Shown here in pieces: positions 55,543 to 63,739 of a stretch of 64,000 nt of DNA. The translations under genes were made by a program, and so were the position numbers. Source of the DNA: Selaginella moellendorffii. Its lineage: Eukaryota; Plantae; Lycopodiophyta. Position 1 is the first letter of the stretch. Each line of letters starts with the position of its first letter. The DNA lies in assembly GCF_000143415.4 (NCBI RefSeq), contig NW_003314281.1, positions 1,899,882 to 1,963,881 of the forward strand. Direction: 5' to 3'. The notes below the pieces were generated by a model. It made no database searches. It was not told where the DNA came from and saw only the letters and a list, made by a program, of their open reading frames with translations.

Positions 55543-56815
55543 TTACAAAAAGTTGTTTGAGAAGAGGTCATTGGCATTTACGCGGATTTGTTCTTCGCTG
55601 CTTCCATCTGATGTTAAGAGATCACGGAGAGAGACGCTTACGCCCGGATTTGGATTTCGCGACTGGATTCTTGTGGTGAGCATTTTGTTGGCGGAGAGCC
55701 AGTCCAAAAATTTGGACCACTTGCCGCTCGCCATGGTCCCCCATTCGCCCGATGGATTGGCAAGAAAGGTCTTTGATAGGAACTCGAGGGACTCCATCAC
55801 CATGTCCAAATCATCGAGGTGCTCGGGAGCTTGTGCCTGTCGCAGCGCTTTAAAAACCGTTTTTTGCTTACAACTTCAAGCTTACCAGAAGAATTTTTGC
55901 CGAGGACTCGATGTTTGCTGTGCTGTAAGCGAATCCTTTTGCCGAAGCTCGTAAGAATCCCCTCACAACGTCTGGTTTCTCCCTGTTGGAAACATTAGGA
56001 AGAAAACGCAACGAGACGAAGGAGCTTACTCGAGAGTGTCCGGGTGAGCTATGACGACAGGAGAATAGCAGTAAGGAATCCTGATACATTGGATGGTGCT
56101 AATCAGTTGCAGGGTACTTCACAAAAGCCACAAACATACCCGTATTCCTCGAGGATAAACTCGTTTAGTTCGATGCCTTTGCGCTTCGCCTGCACACCCT
56201 CCCAAGCTCGAAAAATCCAGGTTGCGTCTGCCTTGTTTTGTAATAGAGTGTTCCAGATTCCCAACTTGTCGGGAGTAGCCTCTTCAAAATTCCCGGCACC
56301 ACCATCGGCTTGGATAAGTTTCTGGACAATTCTGCCTTCAAATCTTGCTGCGTAGGACGCATAAACCTTCCCATCCAAATCTCTAGGACGACACAATCCA
56401 CTCTGTTTTAGAGTAGCTGCACAAACAGGGAAAGATTACAAACAAGATTTCGAAAAATCCAAGTACCAATTGCGCTGAGATCATCTTGAAGAACTGCTGC
56501 TACAGCGACGAGTTTGGACCTCGCTGGAGGTAAATGATAACTTATTACAGTCTCGCTAGGTGCAAGCCCGAATGCTGCATAAACACTTCTTAGTTTCTGA
56601 AAGCACGAACCAGACCACTTACTTGCTTGTCGTGCAGAAACCTGAGAAGCTGGGGTCACTTCGTAGTTGGAAACATGGGGACTTAGAAACTCCACGGAGA
56701 TGCCTTCCTCCTTGTAGTAGCCCAACGCCTGTGCCACATAAAAGCCCACATGATTTGTGTTGGCCGTCCAGTCCAGCGCCAAAGAAACGCTTTGCAAGGT
56801 TCCTTCGGTGGCCAT
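55543..56815 (-). CDS. NMT1/THI5-like (SsuA/ThiY periplasmic-binding-fold) protein, multi-exon
   Basis: LALDWTANTNHVGFYVAQALGYYKEEGI, SETVISY, RPRDLDGKVYASY, ADATWIFRAWEG, YGIPYCYSPV, FLRASAKGF, LFSNNFL*. Confidence 0.88.
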
Positions 56816-56890: not shown

Positions 56891-58604
56891 TCAATGGACG
56901 CTGTTGACAGCAAGAGTATGAGAACAATATGGACAAGTTCCATGAAGTACATTGAAGGACCTGACACCGCGCCGTTCGTCAAGAAACCGTAAGAGAACGC
57001 AATGCTTACTGTATAGTTGTGGGCAACAACGGCAACCAATCAGCTAGACATATTGTGTGGAACGCTTGGCCACAGCTTGGATTGTTACAAACATGATCCG
57101 GTATGCCGTCCTCTGTGTAACATAACAACGCAGTAAAACAGCAGTTACCAACACGAGATTTTACCGTCTGGTAGTTTGTATGCGTAACATATTCCACATT
57201 CCGTTGACAGTCCTCCCAGTTGATGAGTTTCAGGAGGAGGAGGAATAGGAACTTGAAGAACGGTTTCTAGATTGTCAAGCAAGTTCTTATCTTCTGTCCT
57301 GCAGGAAAAATATCATTTTTGTTAAAAGGATCGTAAGAAAGAAAATGTTTCAGAACCATATCATGCTACTCCCAATCAATCTTTGCCTCAGTGGCGAGAC
57401 GACAGTTCCAGGGCCGAAAAAGGTGCACCTAGCAAAAGCAATTCTAAGCGTCATGTAAAAACTATCCTACCTTACTCTGGTAAAGAACGCGGAGTTGCTG
57501 GATTGATCTTGATTGATACTGAGCAGTGACCACCTGTGAAAAAGAGAGTGTGAAATTTGAACACGTAAAACAACGACAAACCCAAATAAATTCGTCTGGA
57601 GATGTCAGCTCGAGAGAGCTGAACAGGTTCATGCACCCAAGCTCTTTTGACAATGTCGTCCATCACATTCCAAAAATCTTGATAGCTATCCACGGCCTGC
57701 ATTTACATTGTTTAAAGATTAAAGTTCCAAAAGGAAAAAAGAAGAAAGAAGTTACCAACTGGAACTGTGATAGAGCATCTCTCAAACCAGCACGGGAGGT
57801 CCATTCCACAGACCACGAAGATGGAAGGTCCTACAAAAAGTTCCGGTAAAAACTAATTGGCAGGATGGGTGCTTACAGCAGTAATACTGGGTTGCGACAA
57901 TGGAAAATCTGGAGAGAAACTTAAACGTAGAGTGTGCATTCGATCTGCGCTGTCGCTGAAAAGAGAGTACTTGATTAAGAAACGTAGAAGACAATTATCT
58001 TACATCACGCGAAGCCAGAGCTTAGAGAAGTCGTCACTAATGTAAGCAATGTTCTCCCATCCCATCTCATCGATCTGAAAAAAATAAATCTAAAGTGTTT
58101 GGAAAGATAGAAGAAGAAGAAGATGCTTACCTGAGTGTAGAGCTGCGAGGGCGATAACACTGGCTTGGATTGAGCATGCAAAATACATTCCTACAACCAC
58201 AGTAAGTAAAGCCTTCGCTCGAGAAATCGAAGTAGAAAGCTTTACCATAACGCTTTTAACTTCCACACAAAACGCATCGATGTTCTTACTCTTCTGCAGC
58301 CTCTGCAAAAAAACTTTAGCATTGAAGAAAAGAGTAAGAGAGAAAACTCTTGCCACTCACATCCCAAAGAACTTCCTCAAAGCCTCGAAACATTGCGCGC
58401 ATCGGGGCGCCACACTCGATCTTTGCGTTGGATAAGGGATTAGAGCTAGGATCTACATCATGGAGGGAAAACGAGAATTCCTGGTTCTGTGAAGGAAGAA
58501 ATCGCCACTAGAAAGAAGAATCCGATTGATAAGGATACCTGGATCGAGAAGAAGACTTGAAATGCCGTGGCGCTGGTGCCAAGCGGCAGCACAGTGGGCG
58601 CCAT
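56891..58604 (-). CDS. FANCL: E3 ubiquitin ligase FANCL (ELF, DRWD and RING domains), ~12 exons
   Basis: MAPTVLP...FFSIQ|NQEFSF, LSNAKIEC, RLQKSKNIDAFCVEVK, IDEMGWENI, DFWNVMDDI..WVHEP, PRSLPEC, ECGICY...CNNPSCGQAFHTICLADWL...SFNVLHGTCPYCS. Confidence 0.93.
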
Positions 58605-58630
58605 TCTCCTCAAGAGCCCTAAGAATATGA

Positions 58631-58646
58631 AATTTTGGCGCCAATT
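58631..58646. promoter_or_regulatory. Two-way E2F-type site in the 58-bp FANCL/RecQ divergent spacer
   Basis: AATTTTGGCGCCAATT contains TTTGGCGC (+) and ATTGGCGC (-), both matching WTTSSCSS. Confidence 0.7.
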
Positions 58647-58662
58647 TTCTAGGGTGCTAGTG

Positions 58663-61007
<2,345 letters not shown>

Positions 61008-61161
61008 AAGAAAAGGTATTTACTTGATGTCAATAAATCAAGTAAGAAACCACAAGGGTAAAAAAGTGCGCTTTGTTTCAAAACATCTCCCGCGTCTTTT
61101 TGCCCTAAGATTATTCTCTTCGTTGAGCTAGGGCGCGATGAGCAGCGTCGTCTAGGGCCCG

Positions 61162-62966
61162 ATGAGCAGCATCGTCTGTCCGGTGTGTTATGAGGATGCC
61201 AAGCCTGGAAGCGAGGATCTCCAAGCTATTGCTGGATGCGGACATGTGTTTCACGAGCTTTGGTATGTGATTCATTTCGCGCGATCAATCTATTCATTCC
61301 TTTCTTCTGATCCTCATTCTCTTCTCGTCAAGTCTCCAGCAATGGCTCGAGTATTGCCACAGGAAACCGTGCTGCCCGGTGTGTAAAGAATCTTGCCCGG
61401 CGAAACAGATCCATCGGCTATACTTTTTATCATCCGACCAACAATCAGTTTCTCACTCGCAAAACAGCAGCGCAACCATTGACGCAGTAAGATCTCCACA
61501 TTTTATTCTCCATGGTTTTGCTCAAATTCTTTACTTTCTTCTTTTCCTTGTAGGTGCTTGGGAAGCTGGAGTCTCAGCTCTCGGTAGCTAATGCAGCACT
61601 ACAAGCGATCAAGCAAGAAAACAAGCATCTCGATGACGAGGTGGATTTTCCTTTTATCAAAAAGTGTTTTTTACTGATAAATCTGTGTCGCAGCTCGCCA
61701 ATCTTAAGATCAAGCTTGAGAAATCAGAGTGTGTTCGACGGAAAGCTATGAGTGACCTTGGCAACTGCAGAGAATCCTCGTCAAGGCTCCAGGAGGTATA
61801 TTCAAACTTTTTTAGACGTCCAGCATGAGCCTGTGTGTTCTTCATGTAGGAAGTGAATAGGAGTTTAGAGGACCGCACGAAGCTGATTGAAAAGAACACG
61901 TCGCTAGCAAAAGAGCTTGCTTCCATGAAAATGTAAGTAGTGCCTTGTATTTGCAGTGTTTTAAAATCGTCATTGTCACAGGGTAGCAGACATTTCCTTG
62001 GACGAGGATGAAATCTTGCGGCTTGCAAATGTAGGCCAGGCAAAGAACAAGGACAATATTATTGACACGCTCACAAGATCCCTTGTCATTCGTAACAAGT
62101 ATGTTTCTATGTTCTTCTTGACACGACCAATCCTTCCAAGCCATCTATATCCAGGAGTTACAGAGACTTGGTGAACAAGTGCAGCTCTTTGGGAATGAAC
62201 GAGACAGTTGCTATTCAAAAAGCTAACAAAGCATCTGAGCAACTCAGAATTCTGAAGGTATGCACAGCTTTGATCCATGGTTATTCTCTACTTATCGAAT
62301 CCAGGCTCGCGTCCAAGAGCTAGAAAAAGCTCTAGAGGTTAAAGAAAACAAGGAGCTTCGAGACCTGAAGAGGAAGATCGAACAAAGTAATACGAACTTT
62401 GTAGCTGAAAAACAGATGGCTTCCACAACCGCGGAACATGAGAACAAAGTCAGGCATGAAACCGCTACTGAGGATGGATGCTTTGTGCCTAAGCCTACAA
62501 ATCTCTGCTCTGATAAAGCTCTACAAATCTCCATAAGGCGCGACGCTCCAATATGTAGCCCGATTCTTCCAGGTAAATCACTGAAACGTCTCACTTCCTC
62601 ACCAGCAGCACCATGAATCGCAGGCGACTTGGCGAAAAACCAAGAGCACGTCTGTGCGCAAGACTCGTCGACCAGAAAGAGAGTGTACGCCGCAACGAGC
62701 GGGACGAGCTCTCCTCGAGGATTGACACCGTCCAGTAGTGACAAGGGAAGCTTCATACTCCGCGGTGCAGATGGCCGTGGTGGAAGAGTGACGATCTTGA
62801 AGCCTCCGGTAAGTCCGATCACTTTAGTCTCACAGTGTTTAAGTTCATATATGTTTCCAAATTCCAGGGAATCAAAGCAAGCGCGCATAAACAATCCAAG
62901 CGTGCCAGGAATCACGGCAGCAACGAAGGATTGCACATAGAACACTTCTTCGGGCGCGCAGAATAG
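61162..62966 (+). CDS. TRAIP: TRAIP-like RING E3 ubiquitin ligase (RING, coiled coil, C-terminal PIP-box-like motif)
   Basis: CPVCYED...AGCGHVFHELCLQQWLEYC...CPVCK...RLYF; coiled coil with TLTRSLVIRNK; IRGADGRGGRV; terminal LHIEHFFGRAE*. Confidence 0.82.
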
Positions 62967-63042: not shown

Positions 63043-63739
63043 TCAAGGAGCTTCCAGGAGCATCTTGCCAGTGTCAAACTCCAGAAGCGGCTGCTGCTCC
63101 AGCCAAGACTCATCGAACTCGATGTTGTTATCCGGGATCGAGAAGAGCTCCTCCAGAAACGCATCGTCCAGTGTAAACGTTTGCTCGTCACCTTCCAAGC
63201 TTCTGGATTGCGGCTGCTTGCCATCGATATCACTTCCCACAAACTCTCCTTGCACAGCTTGAATTGCATCCTCGAAATCACCATCTGCAGAGCTCAGCGA
63301 AGGCGAGGATACCAGAGGTGGTGGCGAATCCTTGTTCAAGGTTAACTCCTCTGGCTCTTGAGACTTGGGACGATCCTCCGCCAACTTATGGGTAGTGTCA
63401 CCTTGTAACGATTGGATGAAGGGCTTCATCTGGGGTGGCAGAGTTTCGAAATTGAGGCCGGCGATAGTGTCGAGCGCGTATTTCTTGCCCGTGTCCGGAG
63501 AGATAGCCGATACCGTGAGTATTGTACGTGTGAGCACATGTAGTTCCCATATTTTCTTTGTGATGCCGAAAATTCTCTTGCGGAAGCAACTTTTTCTTGT
63601 TTCCGGGTCCTGGATGTATTTGAGTGGGATTTTCTTCTTTCCGGCTGTTTTTTTCTACAACATAAATCAAAGAAGGAAAATTGAAGAACTATACATGGAA
63701 CAATCATACAAATACAAATACCTTGATTGATGGCGACAT
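63043..63739 (-). CDS. Type I MADS-box transcription factor (209 aa; exons 63739-63722 and 63654-63043) with acidic C-terminus
   Basis: GKKKIPLKYIQDPETRKSCFRKRIFGITKKIWELHVLTRTILTVSAISPDTGKKY aligns with the MADS/SRF consensus; no K domain; the ORF track misses the domain. Confidence 0.8.

Follow-up and report, generated by a model that had tools for sequence, protein, structure and literature searches.

FANCL, RECQL1 and TRAIP side by side in Selaginella moellendorffii, with a putative bidirectional E2F-type promoter

Between positions 56891 and 62966 of the window (the whole 64-kb stretch of Selaginella moellendorffii DNA that was analysed) lie three intact adjoining genes: FANCL on the minus strand, and RECQL1 and a plant TRAIP orthologue on the plus strand. 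The reading we prefer, with a little more belief than doubt, is that these three single-copy repair genes were juxtaposed in the Selaginella lineage, and that an ancestral E2F element of RECQL1 is probably now used by FANCL as well. We infer E2F binding to the element and its use by FANCL, as we do any co-induction of the three genes or selective benefit of their adjacency.

In the proposed mechanism, FANCL, RECQL1 and TRAIP would have been brought together in the Selaginella lineage, in a densely packed genome. The palindromic E2F-type element in the FANCL/RECQL1 spacer would drive RECQL1, as its ancestral promoter element. The start of FANCL is 30 bp from the palindrome, and FANCL probably uses the element too, which would make the spacer a bidirectional E2F promoter. 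TRAIP would be served by E2F-type words of its own, one lying 76 bp in front of its start codon, the other in its intron 1, and some RNA would pass through the spacer in front of it because it stands so close behind RECQL1. The locus would thus most likely consist of separately E2F-regulated genes lying side by side, with a bidirectional promoter plausibly shared by FANCL and RECQL1.

Gene models and protein identities

The gene models (Table 1) were built by hand, and every intron is GT-AG and 45-73 bp long. An earlier note on this DNA had described three consecutive genes with FANCL and RECQL1 head to head, 58 bp between the ATGs of these two, and 154 bp between the RECQL1 stop and the TRAIP ATG. 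The models reproduce both distances and, together with stranded RNA-seq, the order and orientation of the genes. The trio is flanked by unrelated THI5-like and MADS-box genes at spacings of 75 and 76 bp, so close packing is no peculiarity of these three genes. All neighbouring genes at the locus are 58-154 bp apart, and most intergenic spacers in the S. moellendorffii genome are <200 bp.

Table 1. Features of the FANCL-RECQL1-TRAIP locus, in window coordinates
Feature	Position	Strand	Description
FANCL	56891..58604	-	13 exons (58604 down to 56891), 12 GT-AG introns, 361 aa
FANCL/RECQL1 spacer, putative shared bidirectional core promoter	58605..58662	.	head-to-head, 58 bp between start codons
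E2F-type element TTTGGCGCCAAT	58634..58645	.	readable on both strands
RECQL1	58663..61007	+	10 exons, 604 aa
RECQL1-TRAIP spacer	61008..61161	+	154 bp; AATAAA, E2F-type word, uORF
TRAIP orthologue	61162..62966	+	10 exons, 432 aa
Second E2F-type word TTTCGCGC	61275..61282	+	within TRAIP intron 1

Both spacers contain further short features. An in-frame ATG at 58627, upstream of the RECQL1 start, would add 12 aa to the protein, and if it is used, the E2F element may fall inside the RECQL1 reading frame. Given the 58 bp between ATGs, the element may also sit inside one or both 5' UTRs. In the RECQL1-TRAIP spacer, the AATAAA is at 61032-61037, 25 nt past the RECQL1 stop, and the 5-codon uORF is at 61138-61155, and stems from a duplicated stretch of the TRAIP start.

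FANCL was searched against Pfam and the PDB as exon pieces. The FANCL exon 12 piece matches Pfam FANCL_C (2.9e-10; 40.7 bits vs a cut-off of 27.3), and in the PDB it matches FANCL chains only (4ccg, 6sri and 7kzp). The exon 8 piece matches Pfam FANCL_d3 (8.1e-6, above the curated cut-off) and, at collinear positions, PDB entries 3zqs, 7kzp and 6sri. The predicted architecture is three UBC/RWD-like domains followed by a C-terminal PHD/RING-type finger. As a FANCL, the protein would be predicted to monoubiquitinate FANCD2-FANCI.

The second gene, previously called only RecQ, can be placed more precisely in the plant RecQ1 (RECQL1) subfamily by its Pfam domains and full-length alignment. Its window model matches RefSeq XP_002972846.2 over 602 aa at 100% identity. 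The sequence used for the domain search (P0319), 100% identical to the model over 602 aa, contains DEAD (3.6e-24), Helicase_C (6.3e-18) and RecQ_Zn_bind (8.1e-14), and UBA_RECQL1 (PF28551) is among the domains given for the Selaginella allele P0293, as for all orthologues. The protein ends 3 residues beyond the final zinc-ligand cysteine, without a winged-helix or HRDC domain. In this it resembles other plant RECQL1/RecQ1 proteins (AtRECQl1, At3g05740; OsRECQ1), which are ~600 aa long, have the common order UBA_RECQL1-DEAD-Helicase_C-RecQ_Zn_bind, and likewise do without winged-helix and HRDC domains. Alignment with plant RECQL1 is end to end at 45-50% identity, and Gossypium RECQL1 (P0003) and the Mesotaenium orthologue (P0015) align over the full length. 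The difference is in the neighbourhood: RECQL1 of the other plants examined adjoins neither FANCL nor TRAIP, whereas that of Selaginella adjoins both.

The identification of the third gene as TRAIP is also supported, by several kinds of evidence. The window model is identical to EFJ26067.1 (P0316), and the allele on the sister scaffold has the RefSeq name 'E3 ubiquitin-protein ligase TRAIP'. In the ESM Atlas, the clusters closest to it by features are those of chordate and arthropod TRAIP (0.97, with 208-217 of 256 features in common). Pfam places a RING-H2 domain at residues 6-52 (zf-RING_2, 4.6e-8), and the AF2 model has long helices at 82-178 and 199-287 (pLDDT >90) followed by disorder over residues 289-428. 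The C-terminus carries a PIP-like GLHIEHFF, 4 residues from the end, and the motif ..LQIEHFF.. is kept across mosses, lycophytes, conifers and angiosperms. Other searches were less specific: the RING exon pieces gave only generic RING matches in Pfam and the PDB, a PDB search with the whole protein (P0316) yielded no chain of TRAIP, and the best 120 matches of a sequence search were all from plants.

Animal TRAIP (RNF206), a replisome-associated E3, has the same RING-H2 N-terminus, long coiled-coil arm and disordered C-terminal part, but beyond the RING the plant and animal proteins are too dissimilar for a simple BLAST-type assignment. The C-terminal motif of the plant protein resembles the human PIP box, also C-terminal (QAKLDTFLWS, PMC4923944), but the plant ..LQIEHFF.. 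lacks the leading Q. The Selaginella gene has E2F-type words at its 5' end, and human TRAIP is an E2F target (PMC4673240). By these criteria, a clear orthologue of TRAIP appears to be present in land plants, and its C-terminal PIP-like (putative PCNA-binding) motif is conserved; a literature search found no paper on plant TRAIP.

Transcription and E2F-type elements

Stranded RNA-seq from the same species (three runs from one study) covers FANCL on the minus strand and RECQL1 and TRAIP on the plus strand at 1-6x, with similar and low expression of all three. Read joints reproduce every listed RECQL1 and TRAIP intron; FANCL has minus-strand coverage and a loose end joining exon 13 to exon 12. 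The RNA contig of RECQL1 begins at 58655, and strand-specific reads reach the 58-bp spacer from both genes. With ATGs 58 bp apart and transcription in both directions, the divergent pair falls among bidirectional promoters as defined by starts <1 kb apart.

The RECQL1-TRAIP spacer is transcribed too. An unbroken RNA-derived contig covers 60898-61261 and extends through the TRAIP exons, and read depth drops within the spacer. With a poly(A) signal and E2F-type words inside the 154-bp spacer, separate transcription of TRAIP is at least as likely as a shared transcript.

Continuous RNA raises the question of whether RECQL1 and TRAIP could be one gene, encoding a helicase-E3 fusion or giving a bicistronic mRNA. 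RefSeq does fuse the two on this scaffold (the 1048-aa XP_002972846.2), and an RNA-derived contig of 3526 nt extends from RECQL1 exon 1 across the spacer into the TRAIP exons. However, a contig across two genes is no proof of a single transcript, and here it crosses both the fall in depth and the AATAAA behind RECQL1. On the sister haplotype the annotation has two genes, and elsewhere each orthologue is a gene of its own, the two lying on different chromosomes. The fusion would also require a 157-nt intron of non-canonical CA..AG (or AC..TA) type. We rejected the 1048-aa fusion protein because its junction intron is a non-canonical CA..AG, and we consider it very improbable that the two are one gene in either form.

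E2F-type words were sought with the consensus TTTSSCGC and the looser forms TYTSSCGC, YTSSCGC and WTTSSCSS. The FANCL/RECQL1 spacer contains TTTGGCGC on the plus strand at 58634 and ATTGGCGC on the minus strand at 58638-58645. The earlier note had reported a near-palindromic E2F-type site here, readable on both strands; the site is present and its palindrome is in fact perfect, the 10-bp TTGGCGCCAA at 58635-58644, which is unique in the window and almost central in the spacer. The chance of one TTTSSCGC match in a given 58-bp spacer is ~1%. The E2F-type site reported in front of TRAIP was found as well, as TCTCCCGC at 61086-61093 (also given as TCTCCCGCG at 61086). The TRAIP 5' end has two TYTSSCGC-type sites within 200 bp (61086 and 61275), vs 17 in the whole 64 kb. 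Over the window as a whole, TTTSSCGC is not enriched (11 found vs 9.95 expected) and WTTSSCSS is depleted.

Comparison with other plants used a YTSSCGC word <=100 bp upstream of the RECQL1 ATG as its criterion. An E2F-type element 27-87 bp upstream of this ATG occurs in Selaginella (-29) and in 4/4 other vascular plants: Diphasiastrum (-82), Adiantum (-40), Magnolia (-28, where it is palindromic) and Theobroma (-87). The per-locus chance of such a word is 0.013-0.043 for these four and 0.013-0.1 over the whole comparison, and neither of two liverwort RECQL1 promoters carries a YTSSCGC word within 100 bp. Because the element has the same position in vascular plants without FANCL next door, the spacer palindrome is most likely the ancestral proximal-promoter element of RECQL1, now adjoined by FANCL. 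The element is conserved, so RECQL1 is most likely an E2F (S-phase, DNA-damage) target. E2F/RB control repair genes in mammals and plants (PMC7956360); our literature search found no paper dealing with E2F regulation of FANCL or RECQ1 in plants.

A more sceptical view is that the three are mere neighbours in a gene-dense genome, that the E2F element belongs to RECQL1 only or is idle, that FANCL and TRAIP have independent promoters, and that the read-through is noise. The lack of E2F-word enrichment over the window agrees with this, as do the 58-154 bp spacings of all neighbouring genes and the lack of conserved synteny (see below). The same can be said of Diphasiastrum TRAIP, the sole TRAIP orthologue checked, which has no E2F word near its ATG. 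However, the FANCL ATG is only 30 bp away from a conserved promoter element, so that a core promoter of its own could scarcely be fitted in between. TRAIP has two E2F-type words near its 5' end (<200 bp), and in humans it is an E2F target (PMC4673240). Pure coincidence therefore seems to us rather unlikely.

Linkage in other plants

RECQL1 and TRAIP served as the anchors of the synteny comparison. FANCL and TRAIP are both absent from the RECQL1 flanks of Diphasiastrum, Adiantum (over 3 kb on each side), Magnolia and Theobroma, and of three liverworts (Calypogeia, Riccia and a further liverwort contig). In ~35 species, RECQL1 and TRAIP are on separate contigs. The head-to-head partner of RECQL1 in Theobroma is a DUF3511 gene, and in Arabidopsis, AtFANCL (At5g65740) and AtRECQl1 (At3g05740) are on different chromosomes. 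Within S. moellendorffii, RECQL1 and TRAIP are both encoded on a 1.16-Mb scaffold, which is most likely the sister haplotype. As far as tested, these comparisons suggest that the order of the trio is most likely a Selaginella-specific juxtaposition.

The earlier note had proposed a co-regulated cluster and had named in advance a lack of conserved linkage as grounds for refuting it; the linkage is absent from all six other plant lineages examined. Its gene identities and E2F-type sites stand.

The same evidence bears on the idea that selection maintains a co-regulated repair module, in which a shared E2F chromatin domain, a bidirectional promoter and read-through would give stoichiometric, S-phase or crosslink-induced expression. 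A run of three functionally related genes has P ~0.01-0.05 under random order, for a repair class of 200-300 genes, but this class was defined post hoc and very many windows were scanned. The nearly central position of the palindrome speaks for such a module, but the element is older than the adjacency. RNA is continuous from RECQL1 to TRAIP, these two are together on the sister-haplotype scaffold too, and OsRECQ1 is strongly induced by mitomycin C (PMC6947026). Against this, unrelated neighbours are spaced as tightly, and the linkage is missing from every other lineage tested, including a second lycophyte. We consider a selected module improbable. Its operon-like form, i.e., an E2F-driven crosslink/replication-stress module in which one palindrome would serve FANCL and RECQL1, RECQL1 and TRAIP would be co-transcribed, and selection would keep the whole together, we regard as decidedly doubtful. 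We therefore prefer a lineage-specific juxtaposition around an ancestral RECQL1 element.

Related systems and biological meaning

Mammalian bidirectional promoters of repair genes (PMC2709261; e.g., FOXM1/RHNO1, PMC8104967) are like the FANCL/RECQL1 pair in having divergent starts well <1 kb apart and at least one partner that is a genome-maintenance gene. They are also short and contain E2F-like GC words, as here, the top human word being TCGCGCCA (PMC2709261). The Selaginella pair differs in that it comes from a lycophyte, has only 58 bp between ATGs, and is known from sequence and RNA coverage. Plant operon-like clusters for specialised metabolism likewise consist of adjacent non-homologous genes with one functional theme and proposed co-regulation. 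However, they are usually larger and hold consecutive enzymes of one pathway, whereas the Selaginella trio consists of three housekeeping repair genes.

The cluster itself is a modest finding. As far as the comparisons go, only Selaginella has it, and all genes in this genome are tightly packed. It also bears on the plant RecQ1 subfamily, whose biological role is still open (PMC6947026). The E2F-type element upstream of RECQL1, present from lycophytes to eudicots, is a testable lead to RecQ1 as an S-phase, replication-stress helicase, and the physical coupling of RECQL1 to FANCL and TRAIP in one lineage is a second lead to a replication-stress role. The induction of rice RECQ1 by mitomycin C is consistent with that role (PMC6947026). 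If the operon-like module were true, the plant-specific RecQ1 helicase would act alongside FANCL and TRAIP in crosslink repair coupled to replication.

Gene models, identities and packing

We assembled the three gene models by hand (introns 100% GT-AG, 45-73 bp), and the coordinates in the earlier note all proved correct against them. The trio lies in a very compact plant genome. Since unrelated neighbours are equally near (a THI5/NMT1-like gene, also on the minus strand, beginning 75 bp past the stop of FANCL, and a MADS-box gene with its end 76 bp beyond the TRAIP stop), close packing is not peculiar to the trio.

Features of the FANCL-RECQL1-TRAIP region
Feature	Position	Strand	Details
THI5/NMT1-like gene	56408-56815	-	unrelated
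TTTGGCGC	56776-56783	-	first coding exon of THI5-like gene, 115 bp past FANCL stop; probably a chance match
FANCL	ATG at 58604, stop 56893-56891	-	13 exons, 361 aa
FANCL/RECQL1 spacer, ATG to ATG	58605-58662		58 bp
TTTGGCGC	58634	+	overlaps minus-strand ATTGGCGC
RECQL1 (RecQ helicase)	58663-61007	+	10 exons, 604 aa
Short GA/AG-rich tract	58663-58675		
Long poly-T run	59969-60007		RECQL1 intron 6; skipped as repeat in read mapping
RECQL1 stop to TRAIP ATG spacer	61008-61161		154 bp
TCTCCCGC	61086		76 bp upstream of TRAIP ATG
Tandem duplication, TRAIP start region	61134-61180		GATGAGCAGCGTCGTCTAGGGCCC then GATGAGCAGCATCGTCTGTCC
uORF (first copy of duplication)	61138-61155		5 codons, MSSVV-stop; stops 6 nt upstream of ATG 61162
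TRAIP (RING protein)	61162-62966	+	10 exons, 432 aa
TTTCGCGC	61275		TRAIP intron 1
Glycine-rich TRAIP tail motif	62740-62800		GADGRGGRVTILK
MADS-box gene	63043-63730	-	SRF-TF, 6.6e-7; unrelated

The FANCL and RecQ calls of the earlier note both held. For FANCL, exon pieces served as the sole queries: they match Pfam FANCL_C (2.9e-10) and FANCL_d3 (8e-6), both over curated cut-offs, and their sole PDB matches are FANCL chains at collinear positions. Full-length RecQ relatives were retrieved via a representative search with exon 8. The RecQ model gives end-to-end alignments with proteins of 632 aa (Gossypium) and 637 aa (Mesotaenium). Its domains are UBA_RECQL1, DEAD, Helicase_C and RecQ_Zn_bind, and source records label its family 'ATP-dependent DNA helicase Q-like 1'. 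The plant RecQ1 subfamily, to which it belongs, lacks both human members and a settled role; mitomycin C strongly induces rice RECQ1 (PMC6947026).

EFJ26067.1, encoded on a 2.3-Mb scaffold, matches the RING-protein model exactly. A full-protein search found orthologues across land plants (Diphasiastrum, Sphagnum, Adiantum, conifers, angiosperms) with 40-50% identity over the N-terminal 62% of the protein, some named TRAIP, TRAIP-like, trul-1 or TRAF-interacting protein. Their alignment has a glycine-rich motif (consensus GADGRGGRIKVLR) common to the otherwise disordered tail, and human TRAIP has a similar stretch, DGLGGR. By language-model features, the closest ESM Atlas clusters are chordate and arthropod TRAIP (0.97, with 208-217/256 features in common). 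The AlphaFold model, from 36 plant sequences, has a RING (1-62), a pair of long helices (82-178 and 199-287, pLDDT >90) and a disordered tail (289-428), the same architecture as described for human TRAIP (PMC12242765). Most plant orthologues have ..LQIEHFF.. within their last ~10 residues (GLHIEHFF among the final residues in Selaginella), which appears to resemble the human C-terminal PIP box QAKLDTFLWS (PMC4923944). These features and the RefSeq name of the sister-haplotype allele XP_024545307.1, 'E3 ubiquitin-protein ligase TRAIP', agree with the TRAIP call, so TRAIP orthology is well supported but short of formal proof.

Transcription and the RECQL1-TRAIP junction

RNA evidence came from three stranded RNA-seq runs and one RNA-derived contig set from the same organism over 56950-62949, and is shallow and from one study. 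FANCL is covered solely by pairs with the first mate on the + strand, and the RecQ and RING genes solely by pairs of the opposite orientation, matching what one gene on the minus strand and two on the plus strand should give. All three show similarly low depth (1-6x). All 15 listed joints coincide with modelled RecQ or RING-gene introns, and exons 13 and 12 of FANCL are connected by a loose end. The second haplotype scaffold (1.16 Mb, including XP_024545307.1) carries alleles that are 97.5% identical. Many read SNPs are consistent with two haplotypes, and both reads and contigs have a 6-nt in-frame insertion (CAAACC) after 61441 in TRAIP exon 2, corresponding to that scaffold's 434-aa TRAIP allele.

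One 3526-nt RNA-derived contig begins at 58655, follows all RECQL1 exons and continues into TRAIP exons, unbroken over 60898-61261, i.e., across the RECQL1 stop and the spacer. On the window's scaffold, RefSeq XP_002972846.2 (1048 aa, 100% identical to the RecQ model over 602 aa) fuses RECQL1 and TRAIP. We rejected a fusion protein: its junction (...CSR|GPM..., 60999-61155) requires a non-canonical 157-nt intron (CA..AG or AC..TA), the sister haplotype is annotated with two separate genes, an AATAAA lies 25 nt past the RECQL1 stop, and read depth falls within the spacer. XP_002972846.2 is probably an annotation artefact caused by read-through RNA. We read the RNA across the spacer as read-through or overlapping UTRs, not a fusion protein; a bicistronic RECQL1-TRAIP RNA, with which the unbroken contig is consistent, is a less likely alternative.

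E2F-type sites in Selaginella and other plants

The E2F-type sites that the earlier note placed in the FANCL/RECQL1 spacer and at 61086 are present as stated. The core of the spacer site, TTGGCGCCAA, is a perfect 10-bp palindrome near the spacer centre and the sole copy in the 64-kb window. E2F-type words are not enriched in the whole window (11 observed vs 9.95 expected), and the chance of one in a given 58-bp stretch is ~1%. RefSeq models of both haplotypes take an upstream in-frame ATG at 58627 as the RECQL1 start, which would put the palindrome within the reading frame. In this region (58627-58662), two codons are inserted in frame in the other haplotype, and the RNA contig begins downstream of that ATG.

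Orthologous loci, the source of the strongest evidence here, were inspected for E2F-type words up to 100 bp upstream of the RECQL1 ATG. Diphasiastrum has TTTGGCGCC at -82, Magnolia a palindromic TTTGGCGCGAAA at -28, and Adiantum and Theobroma have reverse-strand TTCCCGCC and TCTCCCGCG at -40 and -87, respectively; within the same distance, two liverworts have none. Because such words number just 3-12 per locus, the per-locus chance is 0.013-0.043, and the element is most likely an old vascular-plant feature of the RECQL1 promoter, irrespective of a FANCL neighbour. A GA/AG-rich tract, with (GA)n up to ~45 bp, lies immediately before or at the RECQL1 ATG in Diphasiastrum (L008:9955-10000), Adiantum (L010:2975-3000) and Calypogeia (L006:9975-10000); this tract might be conserved as part of the 5' UTR or promoter.

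Gene order and origin of the trio

Conserved linkage of the trio, which the earlier note had inferred to be co-regulated, did not hold in the plants compared. The synteny set was centred on RECQL1 loci rather than anchored on FANCL, with Selaginella the only representative of Selaginellales/Isoetales. Within 10-kb flanks, no genes were called beside RECQL1 in Magnolia sinica or Diphasiastrum complanatum; Theobroma cacao has DUF3511, a DNA_pol_A_exo1 protein, DUF4378 and DUF1645, Calypogeia fissa has Yippee, LLG1-like and adh_short, and Riccia sorocarpa has an ABC transporter at the edge. Adiantum capillus-veneris has none called within 3-kb flanks, and a Calypogeia-like liverwort contig has Yip1 within its downstream flank of ~3 kb. 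Searching all seven loci with Selaginella FANCL and TRAIP proteins (tblastn, E up to 1) gave zero matches. RECQL1 and TRAIP are on different-sized contigs in ~35 species common to their homologue tables, including Diphasiastrum (locus tags 21G vs 01G) and Adiantum. Three species have both on one chromosome-sized contig, with locus tags ~900 genes apart in one of them, Paulownia. The Arabidopsis loci are At3g05740 for RECQl1 and At5g65740 for FANCL (PMC3091640, PMC4132730).

In Theobroma, 864 bp separate RECQL1 from the head-to-head DUF3511 gene (L011:8778-10001), and annotation of a Macleaya protein (P0239) fuses the two; DUF3511 is thus another divergent RECQL1 partner in eudicots.

If 22,285 genes were ordered at random, three consecutive genes of the same class would turn up with P = 0.013, 0.047 or 0.22 for classes of 200, 300 or 500, which is suggestive for one genome and weak once the great number of windows and possible themes searched is considered. 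Head-to-head promoters with E2F-like words are common among human repair genes, but pairing of one repair gene with another is rare (PMC2709261), so the FANCL/RECQL1 pair is unusual. Our literature search yielded nothing published on plant TRAIP, nor on control of plant FANCL or RECQ1 by E2F.

RECQL1 most likely contributed the ancestral E2F element, and FANCL now begins 30 bp from it. Such a distance leaves scant room for a separate FANCL core promoter, so the two genes likely share one putative bidirectional promoter, at which E2F may bind. TRAIP carries separate E2F-type words, as does human TRAIP, a proven E2F target (PMC4673240). The three genes may also be co-induced, and their adjacency may have some selective value. 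The best-supported reading is that a lineage-specific juxtaposition brought together the trio, whose members are each typical S-phase or DNA-damage genes.
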